64,000 nucleotides of DNA from Octopus sinensis (GCF_006345805.1 NC_042997.1:27466001-27530000), one strand, 5' to 3'. Positions 1 to 59,309 are shown, counted from the stretch's first letter. Made by a program: numbers and translations. Notes: generated by a model from the letters alone, not told the origin.

Positions 1-9
1 GTAACATAT

Positions 10-70
<61 letters not shown>

Positions 71-148
71 CATACATATATACACACACACATATATACA
101 TATGAGAGAAAAAATGGGGTACGAACAAAGAGAATAGAAACATATATA

Positions 149-547
149 TCTTCTTTATATATAAAAGTGAAGTTGTGTGTCTGTCTCCTACGATTTAGAT
201 TCCTAACTACTTCCACATTTTGCGGTGCAATTTAACCAAAACCGGGTATCTTATAGTCGTGATTCATATCGAGCCCTTCTGGGTATTAGCGCGCGTCTAC
301 GATGAGTCTACGATTTAAAAAAATATTACCATCATTTTTTTCATTTTAATGCATTTTTTCGCTATTATATAAGGGAAGTAACTCTCTAAAAATGTCTACG
401 ATGAGTCAACGATTTAAAAAAAATTTACCATCATTTTTTCTCCATTTTCAATGCATTTTTTTGCTATTTTTTTCGCTATAACTCTCTAAAAATGCTTATA
501 TAGTTATTTCCTTTACAAACCCGAGCAACGCTGGCCGATACTGCTAG
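149..547 (+). mobile_element. Non-autonomous Helitron-like element
   Basis: Starts TC (TCTTCTTTATATATAAAAG), ends with GC-rich subterminal stretch then CTAG, sits between A148 and T548; absent from the mirrored site near 11430 in the other palindrome arm. Confidence 0.6.
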
Positions 548-659
548 TGAGTTTATAAAGAAACAACTGGCGCGTGTTAAAAAGCGTCACTCGATATGAG
601 GAAGTTTTAATTTTGTCATAGTGGACTACATCGTTTTGGAATCCATACTTTGTTAGTTA

Positions 660-721
660 CCTAATAAATTATTGGGTATGTGGAGAATATAATTTAGTCT
701 GTTTACATAGTCTCTTTTCAT
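660..721 (-). other. Degenerate/alternative first-exon region of an IL-17-like copy whose coding exon is predicted left of the window
   Basis: Mirror of 11256-11316; minus strand reads ATG AAA AGA GAC TAT|gtaaac and ...aatttatTAG|gtaact, homologous to donor of copy B. Confidence 0.5.
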
Positions 722-1209
722 AGTCTCTTATAGTCACAAAATTATATTCATATTTAGGGTATTTGAAAATCTCTGACGAAGAAACAATGGAACGAAATCG
801 TAGTCACAGCCAATTTTAAACTTGACATTTATGTTGCGTATTATTTACTAGATACTGACTATTGAATAAACATTTAATATTTAATATGTGTGTCTGACAA
901 AATATGTGGTGTGCGCGTATTGACCATTATTTATGATTTGTCTTATACGAACACACACACAACCACATGGACGCGCGCATGCATACACACACTCACACAC
1001 ACGCACACACATACGCATATATATGTACAGGGCCATATGCCATGCGCCCCTAACACAGTTCACTTCCACAGTGCATACATTCAATACAATATTACTTCTT
1101 CTCGACAACAGGTCTTGCTGTATTTAACATTAATCCCAAAACGAACCAAACAGAAAAAAGATCCTATCACATGCAAATCAAAGCTGTACAAATTTCTTGA
1201 AGGGATACC

Positions 1210-1445
1210 TATTTCTTTACTACCCACAAGGGATTAAAAGCAGAGAGGGCAAACAAGGACAGACAAACGAATTAAGTCGATTATATCGACCCCAGTGCGT
1301 AACTGGTACTTATTTAATCGACCCCGAAAGGATAAAAGGCAAAGACTACCTCGGCGAAATGTGAACTCAGAACGTAGCGGCAGACGAAATACTGCTAAGC
1401 ATTTCACCCGGCGTGCTAACGTTTCTGCCAGCTCACCGCTTTCAA
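1210..1445 (-). mobile_element. tRNA-derived SINE (family starting GCGGTGAGCTGGCAGAAACGTTAGC)
   Basis: Pol III-like head with GAGTTCA(C)AT B-box-like motif; mirrored copy at 10620-10860, partial copy near 41380-41560. Confidence 0.7.
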
Positions 1446-2028
1446 GTGATACCAGGTAAGCTACATCCTAACTGAATACATACATATTAGTCAACAGCAA
1501 AACCCAATTTACAAAGGGCTTTATATCCAAAATCGTTACTTAAAAATGATTTTATCCGGTAGTGCTTAGAAATTAGATATGGTCTGAGCCAATATTTAGC
1601 TTAATCATATCTAAGTTATCTCAGTTATCTCAGTTATCTTTATTTATTTTTACAAGCACAATTACCATACCAATATACTTTTATATATGCACATATGAGT
1701 GTACGCATTTTTTTTTTTTAGAATACTGTACTGAATCCAAGTTTTTGTACTTCGGTCAGCCAAGGTGAATATGGTTTCAAGCCAGACTCTTACACTTTTC
1801 TGTGATGTGAAAGCAATGATTATATATTGCGTTGCATGTCCTTGTAAAGAGTGAAAGCGTTCAAAACTGTATTATTGATTATCTTTGGCAGATGGTTGCT
1901 CATTTATACTCAACTGCGATTCTAGATAAATTGGAACTGTGATTAACAACACTTTGAGTAGAAAATTCCCATTAGCATCGAAAACTAATCAACAGGTAAG
2001 TGAATATATATACATATACATATACATA

Positions 2029-2108
<80 letters not shown>

Positions 2109-2439
2109 TGTATGTATGTATGTATGTATGTATGTATGTATGCATGCATGTATGTATGTGTATGTATACATATGGCCCCAGTACATATATTTAGTTAATG
2201 TAGGATGAAAATATTATTACAAAGATAAATATAGCAGATAATATCATTGTAGTATATTTACTTACTGTAGATGTCTTCATTGTAATGTTCGAGTTCGATA
2301 ACTTGGCACAAAATGTAGAGTCGGTAGCTGTATACTATTATTATTTTCAACTTCGGTCGAATTGTTCTCTTCTCGATGTGATTGGCGATGTGATTGACAT
2401 TAACCTGTCCCGTGTTTGCTTATATATAGTATAAACACA

Positions 2440-3425
2440 AAGCAGAATTACATTGTGCAACGTATATTCTCATTCAACGATAATTGTAGGGACACAAATG
2501 TGTTCGGAAATGCATTTTTCCGTCAAAGTTGCAGATCCGGCGATAATCTATCACATATTGGAAATAAGAACTTCTTGTCACCGACATAATTCTTCTAAAA
2601 TGTGTTAAAAGGAACAGGACATTGATTTTTTTACAGTTTATTAACCTGCTAACCCACATATCACGGGGGCGGTGTCTGTGGTCAGGATTGATCCACAGGT
2701 ACCGGAAACTAAAACACGTTACACTTCTAAATTTTAATTTAATACCATTGCGTTTGTGTATGATTAGACATATTTTTTTCTACTTTTTAACATTTCAAAT
2801 ATGATATTTGAGTAAGGCGCATTCATATGAGAAGCGTTGCATAAAGAGTGTATAATCTTCAAATTCACAAACTTTTTTCAAAATAACAGGTGGTTAATGA
2901 TATAAAGAATATTTTATATTTGTTTTTAGCTTTTGATATAAAATGAATACAAAGCGGAATTACATTGTCTAAAGCCTGTTATTGTTTTTCAAACAAAGAT
3001 ATTCGGAAATGCATCTATCCGTCGAAGTTGCAAATCCGGCGATAATCTATCACATATTGGAAATAAGAACTTCTTGTGACCGACATATTTCTTGTAATGT
3101 GTGTTAAGAGGAACAGGACATTATAATGCTAACCTGTTGACCCATATATTGCACGGGGGTGGTGTCTGTGGTCATGATTGATCCACAGGTACCGGAAATT
3201 AAAAAAAAACATTACACTTCTAAATTTCAATACTATTGTGCATGTGTATGACTAGTAAAAGCATTTTTTTTATTTTTCATTTCGAATATTATATTTGAAT
3301 AAGGCCCGTTCATATGAGCAGCGTTGCATGAAGAGAATACAATCTTCAAATTCATAAACTTTTTTATAATAACCGGTGATAAATGATATAAAGAATATTT
3401 TATATTTGTTTTTAGCTATTGATAT
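2440..3425. repeat. ~510-bp tandem duplication upstream of the IL-17 unit
   Basis: Repeated GGAAATGCAT...GATAATCTATCACATATTGGAAATAAGAACTTCTTG block at ~2507 and ~3006; same duplication at 8830-9790 (inverted) and 34960-35960. Confidence 0.85.
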
Positions 3426-4399
3426 ACCTGAATGATTAAATTGTGTCCAGTGTTATGTCGTATATGATAATTTTTGTTCTCTTGGGTACCATTCTCCTTC
3501 TTGTGCTAATGTTATTTTTGATGACTTCGGCCATTGTAGATATTCCAGGTGAAATTAAGTTGACGGTGCAAACCGGCAATATGGACATTTCTGATAATTA
3601 AAATGTACGGCATTATCACACAATGTGACACGCTGAATCCGCGCCAACATTTTGCTAAATATAAGCCTGTCTGAGGAATGCTCAAACATTTATATGCTAA
3701 TATAATAAGCAAGTAGTTTAATTCATCGCTCATCAGAGAACCGACGAAGGTGCTTTTTGTTGGGTAACAAAAAATATAATTATAAACACTTCCAGACAGA
3801 ATATTCGTTTCAATATACCCTTTTCAATTATTTCAAGACGAATACAGTAGTATATATTATTATATGGAATGAATTAAATCATCTATCATCTTTTGATGAA
3901 AATTTAACAAAAGTAAAGCAACATATGACATATATACAAATAATGTTGGTGAAGAAGATTCATTCTTACTGCAACATTATTGAATGACATCCAACTAGAT
4001 ATAAAGAACAACTCCCATCTGTAAACTGCAATCTTACAACTAACTCACACACACACACACACACACACTCACGCGCACATACACATACATACACTCATGC
4101 GCGTGCGCACACACATACATTATACTATGGGTAAATTGTCTCCATTTTTCAATTTGAATTTTACGCATTATTTGATTTTGATTTTGTCGACTACACAGGA
4201 TAGTTGTATCAGTTGGACGCTATCTGTGAGAAAATCACCATGACTCAATTCACTCTGCCAGAAAGTTGGAAATGACATTCTGTACTGCTTAGTATTTGCG
4301 TTGGAAGCTCCGATACGAACAGATGGTGAACACGCAGAAAACCGTTAGCTTGCCGTGTTCCCAAAACATGTACCGAGAGTAACAGATATCAAACATCAG

Positions 4400-4975
4400 T
4401 CAACATTACGGTGTTTGGAGTGATCATTAGTGATGATGGCGTTATGCTTTAATATATCATCCCACACGGCCTCAGACTCAAAACAGAAGGCTGCATCAAG
4501 AGCTTGGAGGAATTAGTGCTGCCCTGGATCTAGACGGTGGCTGTTGGAAGAGCCTGTGTCTGGCAAGAGGACTCTGTACTATGTCACACAAACAGTCATG
4601 GCTGTCAGACAATTTCTGCCACCACATCACCCCTAACATCTGGCCACCTAACTCCTCTGACTGCAACACCACTTGATTATTATGTGTGAGGTGCAGTTGA
4701 GCGAGAAACCATCAAAACTCCTTGTAACGCCAAAGATGAACTGAAGGCACGGATTATGGCAGCCCTCAAGAGACCGTTCAAAAGTGTTGCAGAGGATTCC
4801 GAAGTCGCCTGGGGGCCGTGGTTGAATCCAATGGCGATTTTATTGAAAGAATTTACTCTTTAGTATTTTAAGATAGTTTTATTTACTTTTGGTAAATATA
4901 TCTTTTAAAATGAGATGTCAGTGTTATTTTCCTGTTTGCATAATTTAGACGACAATATATTCACTGCACTCTGTT
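4400..4975 (+). mobile_element. Tc1/mariner (maT/DD37D-like) transposase remnant
   Basis: Degenerate translation VFGVIISDDGV...SWLSDNFCHHITPNIWPPNSSDCN.LDYY resembling mariner WPPNSPDxNPLDY motif; mirrored at 7260-7830. Confidence 0.75.
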
Positions 4976-5059
4976 TATATAGATATGCATGTGTGTATGT
5001 ATATGTATAAATATATATGTATGCGTATACTAATTATATACATACATACATACATATAC

Positions 5060-5088
<29 letters not shown>

Positions 5089-5091
<3 letters not shown>

Positions 5092-5772
5092 TTATATATA
5101 TAAAACTGAGAATGTGTTTCTGTCTGTCTGTGTGTTTCCCTAAAACTTGAGAACTACACTACCAATTTCATTCAAATTTTACGCATGCCTTACTTAGGGT
5201 CCGGGGAGTGTCATCAGCAAAAAATTTTAACTTTTTGCCTAGGGTAAGCCCACAGCAATATCATATCTTCTCCACTACGATTCCCTTAAACTTGAGAACT
5301 ACACAACCAATTTCATTCAAATTTTACATATGCCTTACTTAGGGTCCATGTTCAACTTCTTGCTTAGAGCGAGCCCATAGCAATATCATATCTTCTTCAC
5401 TATTTCAGTATTACGTGTTAAAAGTGAAACAAAAATATTTCTCTATTTTATGTCAGATGCTTCCACTTTAACAATAAAAATAATAATAACAATTCATTTA
5501 TATGTAGTAAGTAATAATTAAAATCAAACTAAAGTATAATATAATCCTAACATAACAAAGGTAAAAATAGCAATTGGTATAAAATTGCATCAATGATTTG
5601 AACTTGAATAAGTGGTTTCACATGTATGGGAATAAATTAAAAATAAAATTAGCGTGCAGAAATGGAATAGTTCAGATGGATAATAAATAATTAAATTAAA
5701 GAAAATACTATTGTCTATAAAGTATACAATGTAGAGAAAAAAGAAGAGCTAATTGAGTATTGTTATCACTAG
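5089..5772 (+). mobile_element. Possible Helitron-like insertion, left arm only
   Basis: 5' end TCTTTATATATATAAAA followed by TGTCTG repeats like the 149-547 element; internal tandem duplication; CTAG at 5769-5772; absent from right arm. Confidence 0.4.
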
Positions 5773-5782
5773 CGATATCAAG

Positions 5783-5823
<41 letters not shown>

Positions 5824-5836
<13 letters not shown>

Positions 5837-6409
5837 CGTCGGCTCCAGCTCGTATCCGAGCATTGGGTTCGTCATTTTCTATCTAGTATCCTCGGCTGAT
5901 GTTTGCGCCGAAAGTTACTTTGGATTCCAAGTCGGTGGTGAGAGAGTCGTGGGCAGAATTCGCACAGGATGGTCGATGTGGATCGAGTATGTTGACGCTC
6001 CTTTCTTCTGTATTTTACCGCCTCATTCTTTTGGCTGTTCTGCTCGAAGGAGCTGGCTACATTGTGGATAGCAGTCGTCCAGGCTGTCATATCCATGCCA
6101 CTTTTTTCCCATGAGGATATTTGGATATTAGTTTGAGCCCGGGTCTGTTTGAGCTGTTCTTTAAAACAGAATTTTAGACCACCTCTGGATCTTGTTCCGA
6201 TTGCAAGTGCTCCGTGGAGCATGATCCACGGAAGACGTGAGGGCTCCATACGCTGGACGTGACCTACCCAGCGGAGGCTACGGCTGAAAATGGTGGATTC
6301 GATGTTTAGTTGTGAGGCACGGCGAAGAACATCGTTGTTGGTAATGTGATCTTCCCATCGAATATTGAAGATCTTTCGTAGATTGAATTGCTTGAAGCAT
6401 TCGAGGCGC
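5824..6409 (-). mobile_element. RTE-clade LINE 3' fragment (mirror copy)
   Basis: Minus-strand ORF MEPSRLPWIMLHGALAIGTRSRGG...CEFCPR typical of RTE 3' end; reverse complement of 6446-7020. Confidence 0.85.
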
Positions 6410-7016
6410 CTGTGAGATTTGGATGCTGTATCGCCGTCACTTCAAGCGCCTCGAATGCTTCAAGCAATTCAATCTACGAAAGATCTTCAATATTCGATTG
6501 GAAGATCACATTACCAACAACGATGTTCTTCGCCGTGCCTCACAACCAAACATCGAATCCACCATTTTCAGCCGTAGCCTCCGCTGGGTAGGTCACGTCC
6601 AGCGTATGGAGCCCTCGCGTCTTCCGTGGATCATGCTACACGGAGCACTTGCAATCGGAACAAGATCCAGAGGTGGTCTAAAATTCTGTTTTAAAGAACA
6701 GCTCAAACGGACCCGGGCTCAAACTAATATCTAAACATCCTCATGGGAAAAAAGTGGCATGGATAGATCAGCCTGGAGGACTGCTATCCGGAATGGAACC
6801 AGCTCCTTCGATCAGAACAGACAAAAGACTGATTGGTAAAATACAGGTGACGAAAGGAGCGTCAACATCCTCGACCCACACTGACTATCCTGTGCGAATT
6901 CTGAATTCTGCCCACGACTCTCTCACCCTCGACTTGGACTCCAAAGTCACAAACATCAACCGTGGAGACTGAATAGAAACTGACGAACCTAATACTCGGA
7001 TACGAGCTGGAGCCGA

Positions 7017-7020
<4 letters not shown>
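6410..7020 (+). mobile_element. RTE-clade LINE 3' fragment, 5'-truncated at the P1 centre
   Basis: CEIWMLYRRHFKRLECFKQFNLRKIFNIRLEDHITNNDVLRRA...LRWVGHVQRMEPSRLP is RTE-type RT C-terminal region. Confidence 0.85.
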
Positions 7021-7082
<62 letters not shown>

Positions 7083-7259
7083 TTATGTATATAATTTATG
7101 TATATAATTAGTATACATATATATTTATACATATACATATATACATACATACATACATACATACATACATGCATACATACATACATACATACATACATAC
7201 ATACATACATACATACATACATACATACATACATACATACATACATACACATATATATA

Positions 7260-7830
7260 AACAGAGTCTAAATTACGCAAAAAGGAAAATAACACTGACA
7301 TCTCATTTTAAAAGATATAGTTACCAAAAGTACATAAAATTATCTTAAAATACTAAAGAGTAAATTCTTTCAATAAAATCACCATTGGCTTCAACTACGG
7401 CCTCCAGGCGACTTCGGAATCCTCTGAGACACTTCTGAACGGTCTTTTGTTTAGGTTCGTGAATGCTGCCATAATCCTTGTTTTCAGGTCATTTTTGGCG
7501 TTACAAGGAGTTTTGATGGTCTCTCGCTCAACTGCACCGCCACACATAATAATCAAGGAGGTTGTAGTCTGGGGAGTTAGATGGCCAGATATTAGGAGTG
7601 ATGTGATGGCAGAAATTGTCTGACAGCCATGACTGTTTGTGTGGCATGATAGAGAGTCCTGTTGCCAGACATAGTCTTCCAGCAGCCACCGTCTTGATCC
7701 AGGGCAGCTCTAACCCCTTCAAACACTTGATGCAGGCCTCTGTTTTGAGTCTGAGGCCGTGTGGGATGATATATTGAAGCATAACGCCATCATCACTAAT
7801 GATCACTCCAAACACCGTAATGTTGACTGA
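7260..7830 (-). mobile_element. Tc1/mariner transposase remnant (mirror of 4400-4975)
   Basis: ORF 7528-7815 MFGVIISDDGV...IWPSNSPDYNLLDYYVW. Confidence 0.75.
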
Positions 7831-10111
7831 TGTTTGATATCTGTTACTCTCGATACATGTTTTGGGAACACGGCAAGCTAACGGTTTTCCGTGTGTTCAC
7901 TATCTGTTCGTATCGGAGCTTCCAGCGCGAATACTAAGCAGTACAGAATGTCATTTCCAACTTTATGGCAGAGTGAATTGAGTCATGGTGAGTTTCTCAC
8001 GGATAGCGTCCAACTGATACAACTATCCTGTGTAGTCGACAAAATCAAAATCAAATAATGCGTAAAATTCAAATTGAAAAATGGAGACAATTTACCTATA
8101 GCATACTGTATGTGTGTGCGCGCGTGCGTTTGCGTGTTTGTGTGTGGGTTTGTGCGTGTGTGTGTGTGTGAGTTATTTGTAAGATTGCAGTTTACAGACA
8201 GGAATTGTTCTTTATATCTAGTTAGATGACATTCCATAATGTTGCAATAAGAATAAATCTTCTTCACCAACATTATTCGTATATATGTCATATGATGTTG
8301 TACGTTTGGTAAATTCTCATTAAAAAAATGATAGATGATTTAATTCATTCCATACAATAATATATACTACTGTATTCGTCTTGAAATAATTGAAAAAGGT
8401 ATATTGAAACGAATATTCTGTCTGGAAGTGTTAATACTTATATTTTGTGTTACCGAACCAAAAAGCACCTTCGTCAGTTCTCTGGTGAGCGATGAATTGA
8501 ACTACTTGCTTATTATATTAGCATATAAATGGCTGAGCATTCCTCAGACAGGCTTATATTTAGCAAAATGTTGGCGCGGATTCAGCGTGTCACGTTGTGT
8601 GATAATGCCGTACGTTTTAATTATCAGAAATGTCCATATTGCTGGTTTTGCACCGTCAACTTAATTTCACCTGGAATATCTACAATGGCCGAAGTCATCA
8701 AAAATAACATTAGCACAAGAAGGGGAATTGTACCCAAGAAACAAAAATTATCAAATACGACATAACACTGGACACAATTTAAGCATTCGGGTATATCAAT
8801 AGCTAAAAACAAATATAAAATATTCTTTATATCATTTATCACCAGTTACTATAAAAAAGTTTATGAATTTGAAGATTATATTCTCTTCATGCAACGCTGC
8901 TCATATGAACGGGCCTTATTCAAATATAATATTCGAAATGTGAAATAAAAAAATTGCTTTTTCTAACCATACACATGTACAATAATATTGAAATTAAATT
9001 TAGAAGTGTAATGTTTTTTTTAGATTTTTTTATTTCCGGTACCTGAGGATCAATCATGACCACAGACCCCACCCCCGTGCAATATATGGGTCAACAGGTT
9101 AGCATTATAATATCCTGTTCCTCTTAACACACATTACAAGAAATATGTCGGTCACAAGAAGTTCTTATTTACAATATGTGATAGATTATCGCCGGATTTG
9201 CAACTTCGACGGATAGATGCATTTCCGAATATCTTTGTTTGAAAAACAATAACAGGCTTTAGACAATGTAATTCCGCTTTGTATTCATTTTATATCAATC
9301 GCTAAAAACAAATATAAATTATTCTTTATATCATTTACCACCTGTTATTTTGAAAAAAGTTTGTGAATTTGAAGATTATACACTCTTTATGCAACGCTTC
9401 TCATATGAATGCGCCTTACTCAAATATCATATTTGAAATGTGAAAAAGTAGAAAAAAATCTGTCTAATCATACACAAACACAATGGTATTAAATTAAAAT
9501 TTAGAAGCGTAACGTGTTTTAGTTTCCGGTACCTGTGGATCAATCCTGACCACAGTCACCGCCCCCGTGATATGTGGGTTAGCAGGTTAATAAACTGTAA
9601 AAAAATCAATGTCCTGTTCCTTTTAACACATTTTAGAAGAATTATGTCGGTGACAAGAAGTTCTTATTTCCAATATGTGATAGATTATCGCCGGATCTGC
9701 AACTTTGACGGAAAAGTGCATTTCCGAAGACTTTTGAATCTCTACAATTTTCGTTGAATGACAATATACTTTGCACAATGTAATTCCGCTTTGTATTTAT
9801 ATTATATATAAGCAAACACGGGACAGGTTAATATCATTAAGAACGCCAATCACATCGAGAAGAGAACAATTCGACCGAAGTTGAAAATAATAATAGTATA
9901 CAGCTACCGACTCTACATTTATTGCCAAGTAATCGAACTCGAACATTACAATGAAGACATCTACAGTAAGTAAATATACTACAGTGATATTATCTGCTAT
10001 ATTTATCTTTGTAATAATATTTTCATCCTACATTAACTAAATATATGTACTGGGGCCATATGTATACATACATACATACATGCATGCATGCATACATACG
10101 TACACACATAC

Positions 10112-10144
<33 letters not shown>

Positions 10145-10152
10145 CACACACA

Positions 10153-10235
<83 letters not shown>

Positions 10236-10619
10236 TATGTATATGTATCTGTATATATATTCACTTACCTGTTGATTAGTTTTCGATGCTAATGGGAATT
10301 TTCTACTCAAAGTGTTGTTAATCACAGTTCCAATTTATCTAGAATCGCAGTTGAGTATAAATGAGCAACCATCTGCCAAAAATAATCAATAATACACTTT
10401 CGAACTCTTTCACTCTTTACAAGGACATGCAACGCAAACTATAATCATTGTTTTCACATCACAGAAAAGTGTAAGAGTCTTGGTTTGAAACCATATTCAT
10501 CTTGACTGACCGAATTCATTTTTAAGTAACGATTTTGGATATAAAGCCCTTTGTAAATTGGGTTTTGCTGTTGACTAATATGTATGTATTCAGGTAGGAT
10601 GTAGCTTACCTGGTATCAC

Positions 10620-10860
10620 TTGAAAGCGGCGAGCTTGCAAAATCGTTAGCACGCCAGGTGAAATGCTCAGCAGTATTTTGTCTGCCGCTATGTTCTGAGT
10701 TCCAATTTCGCCGAGGTCGACTTTGCCTTTCATCCTTTCGGGGTCGATTAAGTAAGTCCCAGTTACGCACTGGGGTCGATATAATCGACTTAATCCGTTT
10801 GTCTGTCCTTGTTTGTCCTCTCTGTGTTTAGCCCCTTGTAGGCAGCAAAGAATTAGGTAT
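10620..10860 (+). mobile_element. tRNA-derived SINE (mirror of 1210-1445)
   Basis: Reverse complement of 1210-1445. Confidence 0.7.
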
Positions 10861-11492
10861 CCCTTGAAGAAATTTGTACAGCTTTGATTTGCATGTGATA
10901 GGATTGAATGTATGCACTGTGGAAGTTAACTGTGTTAGGGGCGCATGGCATATGGCCCTGTACATATATATGCGTATGTGTGTGAGTGTGTGCGTGTGCC
11001 TGTGCTTGTGTGTGTTTGTGTGTGTGCGTATAAGACAAAGCATAAATAATGCTCAATGCACGCACACCACTTATTTTGTCAGACACACATATTCAATTTT
11101 AAATGTTTATTCAATAGTCAGTATCTAGTAAATAATACACAACATAAATGTCAAGTTTATAACTGACTCTGACTACTATTTCGTTCCATTGTTTCTTCGT
11201 CAAAGATTTACAAATACCTTAAATATGAATATAAATTTTGTGACTATAAGAGACTATGTCAAGAAACTATGTAAAGAGACTAAATTATATTCTCCACATC
11301 CACGATACTTTATTAGGTAACTAGCAAAGTATGGATTCCAGAACCATGTTGTCTGCTATGTTTAACAAAATTAAAACTTCCTCGTATCGAGTGACGCTTT
11401 TTAACACGCACCAGTTGTTTTTTTATAAACTCATGCATATGTGTCTATTCTCGCTGTTCGTACCCCAATTTTTCTCTCGCTGTAGATATATG

Positions 11493-11585
<93 letters not shown>

Positions 11586-11634
11586 TATATATATATATAT
11601 TATATATTATATATGTATATATATTTATATCTAC

Positions 11635-11671
<37 letters not shown>

Positions 11672-12167
11672 CTATATATATATATAATATATATATATAT
11701 TATATATATATGTGTGTGTGTGTGTGTATGTATATCTATAAATCTATTAAAGAGGCATATTACTCTACCTCCGGTATTCGAGTACTATTTTTTCCACCTT
11801 GTTTTGTATTTACGAGCTCACCCTGGTATATAAGTATATATGTATATATGCATAATCCCCTTTCCGTTCTTTCACTTTCTTTTTATTCGACTGAGACCCT
11901 TTATATCGACCACTATTAAAAATCTTAGTAATTGAGATATTTTACAAACAAAAGTTTTAGGTTTTGATTTCATTTTTTTTTGTTTATATTTGTGTTTTCG
12001 CGTATCACTTTGGTATTTGTCACTCATTCAACTTTCAGTAATAGAGTTCCGTAAAATATTTCGTCATACATTTATATATGCGTCGAAAGTAAATGAATTC
12101 TTTGATTAAGCTGATAAATGTCTCAAATCGAAAGTAACCTTGACAAAGATATATTTTTCTCTGACAG

Positions 12168-12695
12168 GTTCTCTCCAGCATTGTCATATTTCTATTCAAC
12201 ATCGCCTTTCTTGTATCATCGGCATCAATTCCAGACCAGTGTAAAATACCAGCCAATCTGAAGGTTCAGTACCAGACATTGTCCCGTGCAGCTATTGGCA
12301 ATAACTTTCTTCTACCAGTTGAAAGAGCTCCGGCCGGAAGTAAGCAGAACTCCCAGACAGACGGGGATAAAACTTGCCCAACGTCTCCTTCATCCAGCGA
12401 TATCATCCGTGAACGTTCAACCTGCCCTTGGTACCTGAACATTACCCATGATTCAACAGTTTTCCCTCCATCCCGCACCGAAGCCGTGTGTCGCTGTAAC
12501 GGCTGCTTCGATTCAGACAACAACCACGAATGTGTGATGGTATATACTCCAATGACTGTCCTTAAACGTACCGATGAATGTGTTGATGGACTGTACGTGT
12601 ATAAACCAAAAGTGATTGAAGTAGCCACAGCTTGTGCATGTGCACGAAAAGCCGACTCACGAAAAGGTGGAAGCAACGATGAATACGAGTCGTAA
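12168..12695 (+). CDS. IL17: IL-17-like cytokine copy A, main coding exon (first exon uncertain)
   Basis: Acceptor tttttctctgacag at 12167, then open frame VLSSIVIFLFNIAFLVSSASIP (signal-like) ... ERSTCPWYLNITHD...EAVCRCNGC...ECVMV...DECVDG...VATACAC; IL-17 cystine-knot pattern; 175 codons + TAA. Confidence 0.92.
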   Translation, partial: VLSSIVIFLFNIAFLVSSASIPDQCKIPANLKVQYQTLSRAAIGNNFLLPVERAPAGSKQNSQTDGDKTCPTSPSSSDIIRERSTCPWYLNITHDSTVFPPSRTEAVCRCNGCFDSDNNHECVMVYTPMTVLKRTDECVDGLYVYKPKVIEVATACACARKADSRKGGSNDEYES

Positions 12696-14156
12696 GAACG
12701 GATAGAATAACGATGTATAAATATGTAATCCAGACGTTATTCAATATTTTATGAAAGATTAAGTCGACCACCAAGTGGTTATCATAATTTGCAACATATG
12801 TTGCATAAAACACACATACAATTTTGCATCTTATATAATTGCATATTTTATAAATGAAGTAATAACATCATCATAATAATATATTAGTAAAATTTATTAG
12901 CTAAATGTTTTAAAATCTTTTGTCCCCTTAAATTGAATAATTTAATATTCAACTGTGCAACAGTATATTTATAAAAAAATAAAAAATACCCGAGTATCCG
13001 GTCATCGTGATTTATATCGTGAGTGTATATATTCATATAGCACATAGGGGCCCTATTGTAACAGATATATACACACGCATACATGCATGCGTATATTTAC
13101 ACATACATACCTATGCTTGCACTCATATATATCCATATGTTCGTAAATGCGTATGTAAACACACACACACACACGCACATATATATACTTAGAAACGTAT
13201 AATTACACTCATGCATACACATATACATAAATGCTTACATGCGTACGTGCATACATTACCTCTTCCGAGAAGGGCTTATTATTATTTTAACAATTTTATA
13301 AAATTCTTATTTATACAACGTATTAAAGGTTTATTATAATGCGTTCATATAATTTTTCGAAGTGTATAACTTCCCATATGCATAAGAAAGTTCGATATCT
13401 TTTCTTCTTCTTATGTAATGTTTTGTAATACAGTAAATAAAGAAGAGATATATAAATGTGTACTGAATTGTAATGGGATGCATAAGATTGAATAAAGTTT
13501 ATATTATAAATGCAGAATTGTTCTTTGTTTATTTCGTATTTTATATTTTTGATTTATATGCACGCGCACGTTAACTCACTCTAGGGATGAATGAAGAATG
13601 TCCAGGAGATATTGTTCATAAAATGCAAATATACAATCGAAACTGCTTGTGTTTTTCTCCTCTATACCCTACAACGGAAGGTGAAGGTTAACTGAGATTG
13701 CAATTGCATTTGGCGAAATACTGAGATACGGTCATTCGTTAAAACTATGCAATCTATTCAAAATGAATAATATAGTGCGCCAGCGTGATTACAGCCCTAG
13801 GGTTAAAACGCACATGACAATAATAAAAACAACAGCAGCAGCAACAAGAAAAACAACAATATAACAATAGCAATCTTAATAATGATGATGATGATGATGA
13901 CGATGATGATGATGATGATAATAGTGTGTGGAATGCTGGAGGGTAATGTAAAATTCATACCAGTGGTGATCGGAGCGTTGGGATAAATCCCATTGAAGCT
14001 ACAAAACTTCTTAAGACAACTGATGTCTTGCCAAAAGCAGCCTTATTGGGCACAGCGCATGAATTAAGGCAAATATTATCTGTCCGAGGTCCTTGTTGTG
14101 ACTTCACAGATAAGTAAAAACTCTGGTGCATTCTTACCTACAGTGTGTTACAAAGA

Positions 14157-14251: not shown

Positions 14252-17200
14252 GATAATAAAGAAGTTCTTGAGGCCTTCTACCATGCCATATATTTCCCCA
14301 CAGATAAGTCTAGCACTGTACAAGCATACTTAAACTGGAGACAGAAACACCCTGAAGTAAGACCCTACATAGACAGTAACAAGCTTGCCAATGTTAGAAG
14401 AAACATTATAAAAAAGAAATTACTGACTGAAGTAGAGATTGATCAGGTTAGACAAGCAATATCGGATAAAATGAACGAAGCTGCAGCTAGAGAAGATAAT
14501 ACAGAGGAAATGATTATAGACCAGCCCAGGGCGGATAAAAACGAAGAGAGGATTGAAAGAGTTAGTATAAGTGATAGGCAAAGTGAAATACGCCATGAAC
14601 CAATCATAAATACTAAAACAGATGAGCATCAAATAGATAAAGAAAGTCACACAAATATTGACCCAACAGAACTACATGAGCTAAAAAATCAAATCATGAT
14701 TGAATGGCTGAAAATTAAAGAAACCAGCATGGATGAGCGTGATACACTTCCTAAAATCCGCAACGCTAACCAAAACATGAAAATAATTGGTAAAATCCGG
14801 CTTGCACTTAAGGATATAATTTCAGTTAATGATGTTGATATCACAAACCTCAACCACCTATACTATGCATCCGCGAAAATCTCAACGATCCTATGTGGTG
14901 TAAAGATTAGAAAACGGCAACAGTCCCACAAAAAGCCTTCTTGGCAAGAGCGTCTGCAACAACAAATTAAAATATTTAGATCTGACATTGAATATTTGAA
15001 AAACCTTAAGGCTCACAAGACTACCAAACCTACAAAAAACCCAAAAATTACTGAAAAAATACAATATGAAAACTATACTTGATATTGATGCCACCATAGA
15101 AACCATCAAACAAAAGGTATCTGCCAAAGCTGCCCGCATAGCGAGGTATGAAAAGCGTGTTAGATTTTTCAAGGACAACAACATGTTCAAAAATAACACC
15201 AAGAATTTTTACAGGAAGATAGGAAAAACAGCGTTACTGCAGGGTCTGTACCATCAAAGAAGAAGTGCAGAGATTCTGGAATAAAATCTGGGCAGAAGAA
15301 AAAAACACACAACGAAAGGTCCCTGGATTGACAGAATATCTACAGAACTGGACCCCTTAGAAGAGCAAAAGTGGGAGGGTGTCAAGGTAGAAGATATAAG
15401 ATCTGCTCTCAGGAGGTCAAGCAAATGGAAGTCTCCAGGAAAGGATAAAATTCCTAACTTCTGGCTGAATGCCTTCCCAGAGAGCCATGAACTGCTAACA
15501 GAACTGTACAATGATGTTTTGCAACACCCTAGTAGGATGCCTCCTTGGCTAGTTAATGGGTTAACATTCCTGTTTCCAAAACGTGAAGAAACAAATGAAC
15601 CAAAAAACTATAGACCCATAACCTGCTTAACAACTATGTACAAAACACTAACATCTGTCCTGACGGAATATACCTATAGTTTTTTAACAGACAGCAGCAT
15701 ATTCCCTAATGAACAGAAAGGATGTAAACGTGGATCCTACGGCTGTAAAGACCAACTACTCATCAATAAGATGATCTTAGAAGATTGTCACAAACGACAC
15801 AAAAACTTATCAATAGCCTGGATAGACTATAAAAAGGCTTTTGATAGCCTACCACATAGCTGGATTAGGAAATGCCTTGAAATGTATAAGATAGCACCAA
15901 CTCTGCGAAACTTCTTGACTGTAAGTATGAGATCATGGAGAACCACACTAACTCTGAACAGTGACAGTGAATCCCTAAATGCTGGTGATGTAAAAATTTC
16001 GTGTGGCATTTTCCAGGGTGACTCACTGTCACCACTCCTCTTTTGTTTATCCTTAATACCTCTCTCAAAGCTGCTCAATGACGCGCAGTACGGGTATAAA
16101 ATGTTTGGTAACCATATAAATCATCTCGTTTACATGGATGATTTAAAGCTTTTTGCAAAAAATGATCAACAACTCAAGGGCTTACTAGCGATAGTCAAAC
16201 AATTCAGTGACGACATCAGAATGCAATTCGGCCTCGATAAATGTGCAAAGGCTACCTTTATCAAAGGAAAAATGACAGAAACATCTAACGTTAACCTTGA
16301 CCAACAGAATGTCATAAAAGAACTAGACCCAGCGGAGAGCTACAAGTACCTAGGGGGGTAATTGAGGGAACGGAATAAGGCATTCAGAGATGAAGGAAAG
16401 GATCAGGAGAGAATGCTATCGAAGAGTGAGAGCAATACTCAAGACAGAGCTGAATGCAAGAAACAGGATCGAAGCAATCAATGCATTAGCTATACCAGTC
16501 GTGACTTACAGTTTCAATATTGTTAACTGGTCAATTACTGAAATATGTCAGCTCGACAGAAAAATAAGGAAACTGTTGACAATGCATAGAATGCACCACC
16601 CTAAGGCAGATACAGAACGACTCTATCTGCCAAGAAAAGAGGGAGGCCGTGGTCTTTTGCAACTGGCAAAACAATGAAGATTGCTACAATTGGCCTAGAC
16701 ACCTACCTGAAAAACTCTGAGGACTGGATGTTAAAACTTGTCTCAAAACATGAAAACAAGAAAGCATCATACTCAGTCACAAAACAGGCAAAGGAATATC
16801 TAAGTGAATTCCGAATACAACCAATTTCGGAATTAGAGATAGATATACAAGAAACAAGCACAGAAAAAGCTAGGCGCATGAAAACCCGTGCCAAAACTGC
16901 GGCCTTAGATATTCTGAATAATAAATGGCAAGAAAAACCTCTCTATGGCAAATACCCAAAGAGAGCGAATAATGCAGATATCGACAAAGCCCTGACCCAT
17001 CAATGGCTAATGGCCTCTGGCTTAAAATCTGAAACAGAGGGGTTTATCATAGCAGCTCAAGATCAATGCCTACCAACAAGAAACTACCAGGCCAACATAT
17101 TAAAGATCAGAAGCAGTCCAACGTGTCGTGTATGCAAGCAACAAAATGAAACCATTGACCATGTGGTCTCCAAGTGCAGTCTTCTAGCGCCTACAGAGTA

Positions 17201-17915
17201 TCTCAACAGGCACGATAGAGCTGCACAATATATTCACTGGGTAATCTGTAAAAACCTGGATTTGCCCCATGAAAAAAACTGGTGGGAACACAAACCACCA
17301 CCCCAGTGCTTGAAAATGACCACATCTCACTCCTCTGGAACTTCACCATTCAAACTGACAGGAAGATAGATGCAAATAGGCCAGACATCATATTGAAAGA
17401 CTTCAAACAAAGAACATGCCTCCTCATTGATATGACTGTCCCAATCGATATAAACGTATCTGTCAAGACCTACCAAAAACTGAGCAAATATAAAGATCAT
17501 GAAATAGAAATCAGCAAAATGTGGAAGCTGAAGACTAAAACAATACCTGTTGTCATAGGTGCCCTGGGAATGATAGCAAAAGGGGCTGTTCAGCTACCTA
17601 ACTCAGATACCAGGAAACCCAAAATTGGCAGAAGTTCAAAAGATAGTGCTCATGGGAACTGCTCATATCCTACGGAAAATACTCTCTATGTAATCTCAAA
17701 GTTTAAAACAAACATAATTTTCGGTTTAAAAAAACAAAAAACAAAAAAAAACACTTTTTTTTAGACATTCATTAGTACAACATCCCCACCCCCCAAATAT
17801 ATGGCACACTAGGCATAACAACAACATGAACTTCCAACCCTGTTGTCTCTTGAGGTCTCTGGGTGAGACTTGGAGCCAACTTGTACAAATATAAAGCAAA
17901 AGTCAAAAGAATAAA
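14250..17915 (+). mobile_element. R4/Dong-type RLE non-LTR retrotransposon, family A, nearly full length, frameshifted
   Basis: Consecutive ORF pieces: RT (NYRPITCL, EQKGC, WIDYKKAFDS, GIFQGDSLSP, YMDDLK), CCHC knuckle (CRVC..ETIDHVVSKC), RHD motif, RLE (RPDII..K..LIDMTVP..KLSKY); flanked by (TAA)n on both sides. Confidence 0.9.
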
Positions 17916-17939
17916 ATAATAATAATAATAATAATAATA

Positions 17940-18014
<75 letters not shown>

Positions 18015-18016
<2 letters not shown>

Positions 18017-20255
18017 GCTCACGAAGGGGAAAACCATCTTAATTCCCAAATCAAATGAAACAACAAAACCAGAAAACTACAGACCAATAACCTGCCTCCC
18101 TACTATGTTCAAGGCATTTACTGCAGTGATATCGCAAAGGCTGAACAAGCACCTGGACGAAAACAAACTGTTCCCAGAAGAGCAGAAAGGATGCCGCAAG
18201 GGCTCATATGGCTGTAAAGATCAACTAATGATTAATAAAGCCGTAACTGAAGACAGCCACAGAAAGAAGAAAGGCCTCAGTATGGCCTGGATTGACTACA
18301 AAAAGGCGTTTGATAGCATCCCCCACACATGGATCCTCGAAACACCAGCCATTAACAAAGTAGCACCAACAATCATAAAATTCTATGAATAAATGGCAAA
18401 CAGTGCTACACCTCCAAACAAAAGAGGGACTCATGAAAACCAAAGACATCCCCATTAGAAGAGGAATATTCCAGGGAGACACGCTCTCTCCACTCCTTTT
18501 CTGCTTGGCACTGTCACCTCTATCTGATATGCTAAATAGAACTGGATGCGAATATAAATGTTACGGCAAAACGATCAGCCACCTTTTATATATGGATGGC
18601 CTAAAACTATACGCTGCAAATGACAAACAGCTGGAAACACTATTAAAGACAGTTCATGGATTTACCAAAGAAATAGATATGAAATTTGGATTAGAAAAAT
18701 GCGCCAAAGTAACCATGAAAAAAGAGGAAAACTAGTTAAGAGTAACAACATCATACTAGATAAAACCAATGAAATAAAAGAATTAGACCAAAGCCAAACT
18801 TACAAATACTTAGGAATCCATGAACTAGATAAGACACAACACACACACAAATGAAAGAGAAAATAAAAAAAGAATATTATAGACGAGTTAGATCAATACT
18901 AAAAACAGAGCTCAATGCTAAAAACAAGATAATAGGTATTAACACTTTAGCTGTCCCAGTTATAAGTTACAGCTACAATATCCTTAACTGGACACGAAAT
19001 GAACTGTCCAAAATAGATAGGAAAATAAGAAAAATACTGACAGGATCTAGGATGCATCACCCAAAATCTGACATAGAAAGACTATATATACAACGTATAG
19101 AAGGTGGTAGAGGCCTTATACAGCTGGAAAACTACTATAAAATAACCACCATAGGACTGCAAAAATACCTACTTCAGAAGGAAGGAAAACTGATCCAGAT
19201 AGCAGCAAAACACGAGCAAAACAAAAAAACTGTTCTCAGTATTTAAGGAAGCTGACAAATACAAACAAGAAATCATACCACCTAATAAACACAAAGAAGA
19301 AGAAGAAGATGATGAAGAAACAACAAAAGCTATAAAACAAATGAAATCCAAACTAAAATAGAACAGCAACGAGCCATGATAAAACGATGGCAAGAAAAGC
19401 CCCTTCATGGTAAATACTGCACTAAACTAAACGCAAAAGAAATAGACAAAGGAAAAATCCCAGCAATGGTTGAGAAGCTCAGGACTCAAAGCAGAAACAG
19501 AGGGATTTTTAATTGCAGCACAAGACCAAAGCCTCCCCACAGAAATTACCAAAACATGTAATGAAAAGAAATATTACAAGTAACTGCAGAAATGTGGAGA
19601 TGGACAAGAACAAACAATAAATCATATTATCTCTAGCTGCCCAGTCCTGGCTAAGAAGGAATATATTCACAGACATGACAGAGTTGGAACCTACATACAT
19701 TGGAAGCTATGCCAACATTATGGAATAACAACAGAAAAAAGATGGTATAGGCACACACCAGAAAAGGTCACAGAAAACGAGAAAGCAACCATACTCTGGG
19801 ATATGCCGATACACACAGATAGAGAAATTAAGGCCAACAGACCAGATATAGTTGTCAGAGATCATGAAGAAAAAAAATGCTTTCTAATTGATGTATCAAT
19901 ACCGGCAGATGACAACGTGTCTCTAAAGAAATGGAGAAACTCTCAAAATACAAAGACCTGGAAATAGAGATAACTAGAATGTGGAACCTGAAAACAGAAA
20001 CAATTCCTATCATAGTAGGTGCATTAGGCATGATAAAAAAATATTCAGACAAATACATAACTAAAACACCAGGACTTACAAACACATATAACATACAGAA
20101 AATTGCACTACTAGGCACTGCACACATCCTACGCAGAACACTTTCCATACAATAACCATCAGAGCATCACAGCAAATCACAGCACATACCCAAGGCACAC
20201 AGAGCTGCGCTCGGTAGTGAAGTGAAAGCACGCTATAAAAATAAAACTACTGAAT
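18015..20255 (+). mobile_element. R4/Dong-type element, family B, 5'-truncated
   Basis: RT motifs (GIFQGDTLSP, LYMDGLK), RHD and RLE pieces; 3' UTR ends in (TAA)n; roughly 96% similar to 25340-28140. Confidence 0.9.
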
Positions 20256-22015: not shown

Positions 22016-22020
22016 CAAGT

Positions 22021-25192: not shown

Positions 25193-25258
<66 letters not shown>

Positions 25259-25263
25259 CATCA

Positions 25264-25339
<76 letters not shown>

Positions 25340-25343
<4 letters not shown>

Positions 25344-28140
25344 TAGTTTTATTTTCTATAGCGTGCTTTCACTTCACTACCGAGCGCAGCTCTGTGTGCC
25401 TTAGGTATGTGCTGTGATTTGTTGTGATGCGTAGGATGTGTTCAGTGCCTAGTAGTGCAATTTTCTGTATGTTATATGTGTTTGTAAGTCCTGGTGTTTT
25501 TGTTATGTATTTGTCTGAATATTTTTTTATCATGCCTAATGCACCTACTATGATATGAATTGTTTCTGTTTTTAGATTCCACATTCTGGTTACCTCTATT
25601 TCCAGGTCTTTGTATTTTGAGAGTTTCTCCATTTCTTTTAGAGAAACTTTGTCATCTGCCGGTATTGATACATCAATTAGAAAGCATTTTTTTCTTCATG
25701 ATCTTTGACAACTATATCTGGTCTGTTGGCCTTAATTTCTCTATCTGTGTGTATCGGCATATCCCAGAGTATGGTTGCTTTCTCGTTTTCTGTGACCTTT
25801 TCTGGTGTGTGCCTATACCATCTTTTTTCTGTTGTTATTCCATAATGTTGGCATAGCTTCCAATGTATGTAAGTTCCAACTCTGTCATGTCTGTGAATAT
25901 ATTCCTTCTTAGCCAGGACTGGGCAGCTAGAGATAATATGATTCATTGTTTCTCGTCCATCTCCACATATTCTGCAGTTACTTGTATATTTCTTTTCATT
26001 ACATGTCTTTTGGTAATTTCTGGTGGAGAGGCTTTGCTCTTGTGCGGTAATTAAAAATCCCTCTGTCTCTGCTTTGAGTCCTGAGCTTCTCAACCATTGC
26101 TGGGATTTTTCTTTGTCTATTTCTTTTGCATTTAGTTTAGTCCAGTATTTGCCATGAAGGGGCTTTTCTTGCCATCGTTTTATCATGGTTCGTTGCTGTT
26201 CTATTTTTATTTTGGATTTCATTTGTTTTATAGCTTTTGTTGTTTCTGCATCATCTTCTTCTTCTTCTTCTTCTTCTTCTTCTTCTTCTTCTTCTTCTTC
26301 TTCTTCTTCTTCTTCTTCTTCTTCTTCTTCTTCTTCTTCTTCTTCTTCTTCTTCTTCTTCATATTTATTAGGTGGTATGATTTCTTGTTTGTATTTGTCA
26401 GCTTCCTTAAATACTGAGAACAGTTTTTTGTTTTGCTCGTGTTTTGCCGCTATTTGAATCAGTTTTACTTCCTTCTGAAGTAGATATTTTTGCAGTCTTA
26501 TGGTGGTTATTTTATAGTAGTTTTCCAGCTGTATAAGGCATCTACCACCTTCTATACGTTGTATATATAGTCCTTCTATGTCAGAGCCTGTCATTATTTT
26601 TCTTGTTTTCCTATCTATCTTGGTCAGTTCATTTAGTGTCCAGTTAAGGATATTGTAGCTGTAACTTATAACTGGGACAGCTAAAGTGTTGATACCTATT
26701 ATCTTGTTTTTAGCATTTAGCTCTGTTTTTAGTATTAATCAAACTCGTCTATAATATTCTTTTTCTATTTTCTCTTTCATTTGTGTGTGTTATGTCTTAT
26801 CTAGTTCATGGATTCCTAAGTATTTGTAAGTTTGGCTTTGGTCTAATTCTTTTATTTCATTGGTTTTATCTAGTGTGATGTTGCTACTCTTAACTAGTTT
26901 TCCTCTATTCATGGTTACTTTGGCGCATTTTTCTAATCCAAATTTCATAACTATCTCTTTGGTAAATCCATGAACTGTCTTTAATAGTGTTTCCAGCTGT
27001 TTGTCATTTGCAGCGTATAGTTTTAGGTCATCCATATATAAAAGGTGGCTGATCGTTTTGCCGTAACATTTATATCGCATCCAGTTCTATTTAGTATATC
27101 AGATAGAAGTGACAGTTCCAAGCAGAAAAGGAGTGGAGAGAGCGTGTCTCTCTGGAATATTCCTCTTCTAATGGGGATGTCTTTGGTTTTCATGAGTCCC
27201 TCTTTTGTTTGGAGGTGTAGCACTGTTTGCCATTTATTCATAGAGTGCCCTATGAATTTTATAATTGTTGGTGCTACTTTGTTAATGGCTGGTGTTTCGA
27301 GGATCCATGTGTGGGGGATGCTATCAAACGCCTTTTGCAGTCGATCCAGGCCATACTGAGGCCTTTCTTCTTTCTGTGGCTGTCTTCATGTCTTCAGTTA
27401 CGGCTTTATTAATCATTAGTTGATCTTTACAACCATATGAGCCTTTGCGGCATCCTTTCTGCTCTTCTGGAAACAGGTTGTTTTCGTCCAGGTGCTTGTT
27501 CAACCTTTGCGATATCACTGCAGTAAATGCCTTGTACATTGTAGGGAGACAGGTTATTGGTCTGTAGTTTTCTGGTTTTGCTGTCTCATTTGATTTGGGA
27601 ATTAAGATGGTTTTCCCCTTCGTGAGACATTCAGGCATTGTCTCTGGCTCTGCTAGTATGTTGTTAATGTTTTCAGCCAGCTTTTTGTGCATTCCTGTTA
27701 GATATTTCAACCAGAAGCTGGGGATCTTGTCATGCCCAGGTGCCTAGTCTTTGCAGTGCCTGGGTGACCTCTTCAGTTGTTATGGGGGTCCAAAAATTGC
27801 TCAGATACTGAGTTTGTTGTTTTATTACTCCTTTTTGTTTTTGATTGTTAGTTCGCCGACCATATTCCTTTCCAGAATTCTTCCACTTCTTCTGCCGTTG
27901 GTGCTGCAGTGATTTCTATTTTATTTTTGCCAAGTTCTTGGTAGAACTTTTTGGGGTTGGAGTTGAAATGTTTGTTTTGTTCAAAGAAGCGCTGGCGTTT
28001 CTCGTACCGGCGGATCCTTTGTGCTTTGGCAAGGATATCTTGCTTCAGATTTTCTTTTATCTCAGGTAAATCTTTTTCTGTGATGGTATATTTCGGAGTA
28101 TTTTTGTTTTCTTTTTGTTGCTCAGTAGCGTTGATTGTCT
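25340..28140 (-). mobile_element. R4/Dong-type element, family B
   Basis: RT and RLE ORF pieces (25369-25632, 25677-26594, 26790-27080, 27324-27710); (GAA)n expansion giving poly-E; flanked by (TAA/ATT)n. Confidence 0.9.
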
Positions 28141-29662: not shown

Positions 29663-29806
29663 TATTATGATTGTCATTGTTATGATATTGTTATATTTTT
29701 GCTTTTGTTGTTGTTTCTGCTGTTATTTTTATCGTTGTCATGTGCGTTTGAGCCCTAGGGCTATAATCACGTTGGCGCACTAATATATTATTGATTTTGA
29801 ATAGAT

Positions 29807-34583: not shown

Positions 34584-34635
<52 letters not shown>

Positions 34636-59063: not shown

Positions 59064-59120
<57 letters not shown>

Positions 59121-59272: not shown

Positions 59273-59309
<37 letters not shown>

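Follow-up and report, generated by a model that had tools for sequence, protein, structure and literature searches.

We examined a 64,000-nucleotide stretch of the Octopus sinensis genome (GCA_006345805.1, CM016859.1:27,466,001-27,530,000, plus strand; hereafter, the window) that carries genes of the interleukin 17 (IL-17) family and a giant palindrome, P1, whose mirror-image arms face each other across a spacer of 36 nt. Positions are counted from the first letter of the window, with negative numbers for DNA to its left. For analysis the window was joined to 11.6 kb of its left flank, yielding 75.6 kb in total with no runs of N. P1 is centered at 6410-6445, or about 27.47 Mb on a 213-Mb chromosome, an interstitial position, and a second palindrome, P2, is centered at 22,016-22,020. 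We designate the three IL-17 copies of the region U0, U1 and U2, and the DNA upstream of U2, which is a third copy of the arm DNA, T. P1 is probably a real inverted segmental duplication, formed and later modified roughly as we describe below.

P1 is a head-to-head pair of IL-17 genes, and each of its arms is a gene unit that extends beyond the upstream DNA alone. NCBI models U0 (XP_029645913.1) as a minus-strand gene spanning -1628 to 2280, with an intact main coding exon at -1628 to -1101 and an annotated first coding exon (2266-2280, minus strand; MKTST) inside the left arm. U1 (XP_029646807.1) is modeled on the plus strand (8529-12695), with a main coding exon in intact reading frame at 12168-12695 and a first coding exon annotated inside the right arm (8529-8609; MAEHSSDR...). 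U1 matches the Pfam family IL17 (PF06083) with an E-value of 1.3e-16 (score 61.2 bits, cut-off 24), and the proteins nearest to the IL-17-like frame at 12,165-12,692 come from Octopus and are named interleukin 17-like, the best being a 99% identical protein of O. sinensis; the CM016859.1 locus that encodes this protein matches 21,573-42,885 of the window at 100% identity. The U2 unit (31412-36548, minus strand) comprises the gene for XP_036365846.1, with its main exon at 31573-32100, and the upstream region T. The main exons of U0, U1 and U2 are all intact and belong to three separate NCBI gene models. A first-pass annotation of the window had described two IL-17 upstream regions lying head to head, and indeed XP_029645913 (minus) and XP_029646807 (plus) diverge from the P1 center. 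The P1 duplication gives two intact IL-17 paralogues with near-identical upstream sequence.

The main IL-17 exon and about 85 nt upstream of it are 98-100% identical among the three copies (compared at 12080-12695, 31573-32190 and, in the left flank, -1628 to -1015), with flanks at 80-94%. U0 diverges strongly from the others over its last 18 codons (proportions of synonymous and nonsynonymous differences, pS 0.29 and pN 0.18), producing a different C-terminal tail, and the paralogue-specific C-terminal codons of the IL-17 copies are ADTRNVDGDDDYES versus ADSRKGGSNDEYES. The annotated first coding exons of U0, U1 and U2 (the last at 32862-32885; MKKYYSLE) occupy non-homologous positions and encode unrelated N-termini; probably, at least two of the three gene models are wrong at the 5' end.

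Structure of the palindrome P1

Inverted-repeat and BLAST scans delineated mirror-image arms at 1-6409 and 6446-12,640 around the spacer (6410-6445). The mirrored blocks are collinear and pair 548-1085 with 11433-10903 (89% identity), 1161-1552 with 10904-10513 (93%), 1751-4950 with 10514-7266 (92.4%, 3.3 kb) and 5828-6409 with 7027-6446 (90%). All of the blocks have E-values of 0 to 1e-160 and, therefore, the mirror match is not due to chance. Global alignment of the left arm to the reverse complement of the right arm, the check proposed with the first-pass annotation, confirmed the mirror: identity is 92.0% over 5,054 aligned columns in the window when gaps are counted, rises to 94.3% in well-aligned blocks once microsatellite noise is set aside, and stays at a fairly even 91-94% over most of the arm. 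Thus, the long palindrome with a 36-nt spacer was correctly recognized at first pass, but its limits (100-11480) were not. The window edge cuts the left arm (1-6409, minus orientation), which continues off-window to about -1575 (record position 27,464,425) and holds the upstream region of U0 and its main exon; the high-identity part of the right arm (6446-12640, plus orientation) holds the DNA upstream of U1 together with the greater part of its main coding exon. High identity is also seen off-window, where -1787 to -902 matches 12,855 to 11,968 at 96.4%, and a weaker mirror similarity reaches about -2744 on the left (65-76%) and 13,770 on the right (65-83%). The arms measure about 8.0 kb on the left, of which arm-specific insertions make up 1.5 kb, and about 6.2 kb on the right. 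With arms of at least 1 kb that are at least 90% identical and oppositely oriented on one chromosome, P1 is an inverted segmental duplication by the generic definition.

The center of P1 lies in a long interspersed nuclear element (LINE). The unpaired spacer measures 36 nt, or 30 nt if the three mismatched bases on each side are assigned to the arms, and encodes C-E-I-W-M-L-Y-R-R-H-F-K on the plus strand, in frame with the LINE copy of the right arm. Each arm starts with a 5'-truncated LINE 3' fragment, and the two copies oppose each other by their truncated 5' ends. The left copy (5828-6409, minus strand; open reading frame (ORF) at 5875-6441) was matched by tblastn to the C-terminal part of ORF2, after the reverse-transcriptase domain, and its 5' end is the junction. 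The right copy (6410-7027, plus strand) is 36 nt longer at the 5' end, and the spacer is this extra LINE sequence and, as such, native to the right arm. A phmmer search with the translation of 6396-6731 retrieved 3,300 matches, most of them starting at residue 4-6, and the homologues read LLYACE(I/T)WTLYR where the window has SIRGACEIWMLYRR; in the frame that crosses the center, the junction thus falls after G4 and before A5. The native LINE and the folded-back arm could share GC at most at this point, or possibly CGC. Full-length relatives are ORF2 proteins with an APE endonuclease (Exo_endo_phos) and RVT_1. The mirrored retroelement fragment seen at first pass is a LINE 3' fragment of putative RTE affiliation. 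An exhaustive HMMER search found relatives of the central LINE at the protein level only; a word-indexed protein search returned nothing at 1e-10, an over-strict cut-off, and about 190 kb of octopus loci contained no close copy. Nor is the left-arm LINE ORF on record in any assembly searched, and a 24-mer spanning the P1 junction is absent from metagenome contigs. As single-stranded DNA, the central 296 nt are predicted to form a near-perfect hairpin (-164 kcal/mol, z -33.6), and the locus thus carries a hairpin-prone center. LINE twin priming was rejected as a source of the mirror, because the mirror extends into the non-LINE flanks and because the truncation of the LINE at P2 is on the 3' side.

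The rest of the arms consists of host gene, upstream DNA and decayed, unrelated repeats. Compared to about 190 kb of other octopus loci, the arms had only interspersed repeats in common, and a mobile element with long inverted termini (Foldback-type) was rejected because there are no repeated copies of the arms. A two-copy tandem repeat in the left arm (2494-3426) is mirrored in the right arm (8792-9736), where it overlaps the patch of top identity (98%, right-arm 9064-9663), and is also present in T (35,032-35,963). Its copies are 83-90% alike and have a period of 487-499 nt rather than the 510 bp attributed to this mirrored duplication at first pass; Tandem Repeats Finder was blind to the ~499-nt repeat, which is at the tool's period limit. 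A stray ~499-nt unit in the left flank (-4078 to -3716), downstream of U0, is 93% identical to 8875-9239, and the unit may be mobile or the relic of an older duplication. The mirrored short interspersed nuclear element (SINE) of the first-pass annotation corresponds to a SINE-like repeat of about 235 nt at 1205-1439 and 10623-10860, flanked by a target-site duplication of about 14 nt, with copies in O. vulgaris and O. bimaculoides loci. A three-way alignment revealed its site occupied in both P1 arms and empty in T. When 1-13,000 was scanned against Rfam and for tRNAs, the only matches were to microsatellites, all of them sub-threshold, and there was no tRNA-like SINE head. A frame-shifted transposase remnant (4053-4950, plus strand) is likewise mirrored (7266-8173, minus strand). 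For ORFs taken in one frame from the transposase and LINE remnants, Pfam returned no match, and the frame-stitched transposase peptide matched the Sleeping Beauty transposase (5cr4_A, E 2e-4) and, below the cut-off, the Pfam domain DDE_3 (E 0.085). These weak matches suggest a member of the Tc1/mariner superfamily, in keeping with the mariner remnant reported at first pass. The transposase remnant and the central LINE are both absent from T.

Arm-specific insertions and deletions distinguish the two arms. The insertions noted at first pass at 149-547 and about 5090-5770 were recovered as a 399-nt repeat at 150-548, which has a 91.5% identical copy in an O. vulgaris locus and an empty site at 11432 in the right arm, and as extra DNA of 510 and 111 nt at 5110-5619 and 5664-5774, which has related O. 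vulgaris copies and only a microsatellite (7080-7124) as its right-arm counterpart. A third left-arm-only repeat insertion lies off-window (-897 to -458) and belongs to a ~400-nt SINE-like family. The family has at least 10 copies (82-95% identity) in the window and left flank, among them 29804-30234, 37954-38358, 43932-44357, 53891-54302, 58854-59273 and 63607-64000. Conversely, the right arm lacks the left-arm segments 1086-1162 and 1553-1752, with the deletion points at 10,902 and 10,512. As both are present in the left arm and in T (34,213-34,369 for the segment 1553-1752), they were lost from the right arm.

Formation and later history of P1

The third copy of the arm DNA allowed us to order the events. 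The left arm and T align collinearly over left-arm positions -1798 to 4043, with 75-93% identity. In the best block common to the three copies, which is in the upstream region, the left and right arms are 96.1% identical and each arm is 86% identical to T; the left and right arms share the base at 170 sites versus 27 and 22 for the other groupings. This difference, together with the absence from T of the SINE-like repeat, the transposase remnant and the LINE, makes P1 younger than the split from U2. Site groupings also locate the outer boundary. U1 sides with U0 upstream of about 12,080 (20 sites versus 4) but with U2 downstream of 12,640 (11:0, then 36:5, 35:7 and 34:9). Thus, the high-identity P1 arm ends within the last ~55 nt of the coding sequence. 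The boundary could stem from the resolution of the duplication, by homologous recombination with an inverted paralogue of greater age, or from U1-U2 conversion across the neighboring palindrome that afterwards replaced the 3' part of U1.

Divergence between the arms is uneven. The first 286 nt from the center contain 5 mismatches (5/286) and the second 286 nt contain 35 (35/286; p 6e-7), a patch in the upstream region has 12/600 compared to 170/2586 around it (p 2e-6), and the exon zone has 6/561. The synonymous divergence of the U0 and U1 exons (0.018) is below that of the flanks and, therefore, selection alone is not the cause of exon similarity. A single clock is insufficient to explain this pattern, and patchy gene conversion is its simplest account. 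The P1 duplication looks several million years old and fairly ordinary, and with 6-9% arm divergence it should predate the O. sinensis/O. vulgaris split, which took place 2.5 million years ago.

The right arm of P1 is also the outer part of the left arm of P2. The P2 center (22016-22020) has a 5-nt spacer, joins U1 and U2 tail to tail and falls within a fragment that codes for reverse transcriptase and is truncated on the 3' side. This 3' truncation means that the break struck an element already in place and did not arise through a LINE insertion. The 290-nt central arms of P2 are 88% alike, and mirrored blocks with 80-94% identity run from 8173 to 36,548. A large LINE (RVT_1, zf-RVT) at 14471-19320 (plus strand) is in the downstream part of U1 and is partly mirrored at 25203-27631 (minus strand), with about 3.2 kb of it having no counterpart in the other P2 arm. 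This LINE explains why the AT skew is strong at 14-20 kb and reversed at 24-28 kb.

We propose a fold-back type of event for P1, in the class of template switches that includes microhomology-mediated break-induced replication (MMBIR) and origin-dependent inverted-repeat amplification (ODIRA). A strand copying the right-hand unit would have stalled or broken inside the LINE at about 6410 and then, by folding back or by a template switch, have continued on the complementary strand at a distance of 36 nt, with no more than 2-3 nt of microhomology (GC). The unit would then have been copied backwards to generate the mirror-image U0 arm, and the outer end could have been resolved by homologous recombination within the 3'-terminal part of the coding exon of the IL-17 gene (about 12,500-12,640). 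Equally compatible is a variant in which a once-symmetrical palindrome was trimmed unequally by a break at its center followed by end joining. Subsequently, the left arm would have gained three repeat insertions (150-548, 5110-5619 and -897 to -458) and the right arm would have lost two segments (1086-1162 and 1553-1752), while the arms diverged to a Kimura two-parameter (K2P) distance of about 0.06-0.09 and patchy arm-to-arm gene conversion held some stretches (286 nt at the center, the 600-nt upstream patch and the coding exon) at 98-99%.

This proposal presumes that the junction is real, and an assembly artefact is the alternative that would undo it: a fold-back chimeric read, or mis-joined haplotigs or paralogous contigs, could have created the 6410-6445 junction between units that are themselves real but do not form a palindrome. 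The arms, however, differ by 503 substitutions and only 16 one-base indels, in addition to the large insertions and deletions described above, with a transition to transversion ratio of 181:126 in well-aligned blocks. Raw long-read errors are mostly indels. Five of the substitutions are within 286 nt of the center, and such substitution-type differences right up to the center make a single-molecule fold-back unlikely, because its arms would polish to identity. Furthermore, the near-identical arms of a fold-back chimera meet at a molecule end or adapter, whereas the P1 spacer is native, in-frame LINE coding sequence and contains no library adapter. The absence of N runs indicates that P1 is not a scaffolding join either. 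Two haplotypes joined by mistake, the condition named at first pass as refuting the palindrome, would stay collinear to the contig ends and diverge by about as much as the heterozygosity. The mirror homology of P1 stops instead (at about -1575 and 12,640 for high identity and at -2744 and 13,770 for the weaker similarity), the noncoding K2P distance between the arms (0.06-0.09) is 5-7 times the heterozygosity reported for the sister species O. vulgaris (1.22%; PMC10700109), and three copies with mosaic relationships, the third of them more diverged, are incompatible with two haplotypes. The first-pass opinion that a fold-back chimera is unlikely, based on the substitutions and insertions in the arms, thus holds. 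Several points nevertheless weigh against our interpretation, and some would favor an artefact: the junction rests on a single PacBio and Hi-C assembly, which has 5.2% duplicated BUSCOs compared to 0.5% in O. vulgaris (PMC10700109); identity peaks (98.3%) in the 286 nt adjoining the P1 center, as a partly artefactual junction could also produce; and two near-spacerless palindromes within 16 kb are an unusual pattern, and a long palindrome whose spacer is short is generally regarded as unstable (PMC10766186). Microhomology is, moreover, bounded only at 2-3 nt at the junction, as we found no close LINE copy from which the pre-junction sequence could be rebuilt, and three copies cannot separate an outer boundary that dates from the duplication event from one made by later U1-U2 conversion. 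The O. vulgaris IL-17 loci that we compared are not orthologous to P1 and had only interspersed repeats in common with it. On balance, we regard an artefactual junction as unlikely.

Granted a real junction, its timing and its relationship to P2 could still be other than we propose. An old head-to-head pair, dating back to the 65-77% identity of the downstream DNA, could have had its inner region homogenized by conversion from the center. Beyond 12,640 the arms drop to 65-83% and yet align to about 13,770, arm identity is patchy, the synonymous divergence of the exons is low, and inverted pairs of IL-17 genes are, as described below, old and common (all seven adjacent pairs in three species), all of which such a history would accommodate. 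It would still require the original fold-back for the LINE-centered junction, however, and so differs from our proposal mainly in timing; it would also require that each of the three mobile-element insertions absent from T was transferred by conversion, and most of the arm has the fairly even identity (91-94%) that one dated event would leave. An old, homogenized pair is, in our judgment, highly improbable. Alternatively, P1 and P2 could be the two junctions of one ODIRA-type inverted triplication that later underwent deletions and uneven conversion. As in such triplications, the middle copy of the three is inverted (U0 minus, U1 plus, U2 minus), both junctions are the centers of palindromes with short spacers (36 and 5 nt), and in P1 and P2 alike the inner arms are more similar than the outer arms; the model also predicts junctions at short interrupted inverted repeats and secondary rearrangement thereafter (PMC10766186). 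Copies made in one ODIRA event are, however, co-extensive and of equal age. Here their extents are unequal, with U0 lacking the downstream part (13.8-22 kb) and U2 lacking the transposase remnant and the LINE, and the left and right arms are 96% identical compared to 86% to T. The SINE-like insertion with its target-site duplication is in both P1 arms and its site is empty in T, which requires an older U2 split or a conversion event that carried the insertion across. As for the junctions, P1 has a 36-nt native spacer with a possible 2-3 nt of microhomology, and the 5-nt spacer of P2 is outside the 40-80 nt described for yeast. Two successive fold-back-type events fit these observations better than one, and a single triplication seems to us about as unlikely as an artefact.

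Orientation of IL-17 genes in octopus

Inverted orientation is not restricted to the three copies joined by P1 and P2. In the left flank, an IL-17 exon at -11397 to -10730 (plus strand; annotated product, 195 amino acids) is about 79% identical to U0 and tail to tail with it. On the other side, an IL-17-like exon at 43318-43843 (plus strand) is head to head with U2; this fourth exon is 51% identical to U1 and, given its in-frame stop codons, probably belongs to a pseudogene. Orientation thus alternates over five consecutive IL-17 genes. When loci of O. sinensis, O. vulgaris (two) and O. bimaculoides (one) were taken together, adjacent IL-17 genes were inverted in 7/7 pairs, an outcome with a probability of 0.8% under random orientation, although the pairs are not independent events. 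The pair of the O. bimaculoides locus, a quarter of which is N, is convergent and only its exons are alike. Both O. vulgaris (OX597814.1, ~132 Mb) and O. sinensis (CM016859.1, ~134 Mb) have a second IL-17 cluster about 107 Mb away on the same chromosome, where adjacent genes form convergent pairs about 8 kb apart and, again, only the exons are alike. We also detected a small palindrome near another O. sinensis IL-17 gene (CM016859.1, ~134 Mb; positions 6525-8098 of the locus L009), with 699-nt arms that are 99.3% identical and a 180-nt spacer; it may be a transposon with inverted termini.

The 31-36 IL-17 genes of O. bimaculoides have been described as tandem duplications (PMC8353272). A more speculative idea, which we put forward tentatively and consider rather doubtful, is that the octopus IL-17 family grows mainly by inverted duplication of the replication type (fold-back or ODIRA-like template switches) rather than by classical duplication in direct tandem, and that the window keeps two successive junctions (36 and 5 nt) that survived for millions of years. 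If true, the 'unstable precursor' structures put forward for inverted copy-number variants in humans would have a natural and fixed instance in the window, and octopus would seem unusually tolerant of long palindromes with short spacers.

Comparison with known palindromes and gene clusters

In P1, an immune gene unit probably underwent inverted segmental duplication, and it is notable that a very short spacer apparently persisted. If confirmed, it would mean that an expanded cephalopod cytokine family adds copies by mirror duplication, each carrying the whole upstream region, and it would offer a dated natural example of intact fold-back junctions, with formation, insertions and deletions, and conversion readable in one region. 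It is also a warning for annotation, as the three near-identical IL-17 genes are separate paralogues.

Among known systems, the palindromes of primate and mouse sex chromosomes (P1-P8 of the human Y and 26 on the human X) bear genes, as does the octopus palindrome. They are defined by arms longer than 8 kb with more than 99% identity, kept up by gene conversion, and have spacers of 77 bp to 358 kb (PMC8327919). The arms of the octopus P1 are about 8.0 kb (left) and 6.2 kb (right) long. Its spacer of 36 nt is shorter, and its arm identity of 92-94%, with conversion only in patches at 98-99%, falls short of the >99% required by Jackson et al. (2021). Unlike its sex-chromosome counterparts, it is not known as sex-linked and contains immune cytokine genes rather than testis genes.

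P1 and P2 together resemble the ODIRA triplications of yeast (SUL1) and the human duplication-inverted triplication-duplication (DUP-TRP/INV-DUP) rearrangements in having three copies in alternating orientation and in keeping a short native spacer. The likeness extends to the ends of the event, one with little or no homology and the other in homologous inverted sequence (PMC10766186, PMC4689423). However, the yeast and human events are new or selected and their copies identical, whereas the octopus copies are millions of years old and unequal in extent and divergence. The head-to-head junction of P1, which has little microhomology and a spacer some tens of bases long, is also like the fold-back inversions of breakage-fusion-bridge cycles. 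These cycles lose the distal part of the chromosome and are known mainly from tumors, whereas P1 is interstitial and appears fixed in the germ line.

A parallel in gene content is with the IL-17 cluster expansions of marine molluscs and sea urchins, where, as at the octopus locus, PF06083 members form a lineage-specific cluster. The literature describes these clusters as tandem and does not mention orientation; the adjacent octopus pairs that we examined, by comparison, are all inverted (7/7), and the two youngest retain palindromic junctions. The 'tandem' label of published cluster descriptions thus misses the alternating orientation.

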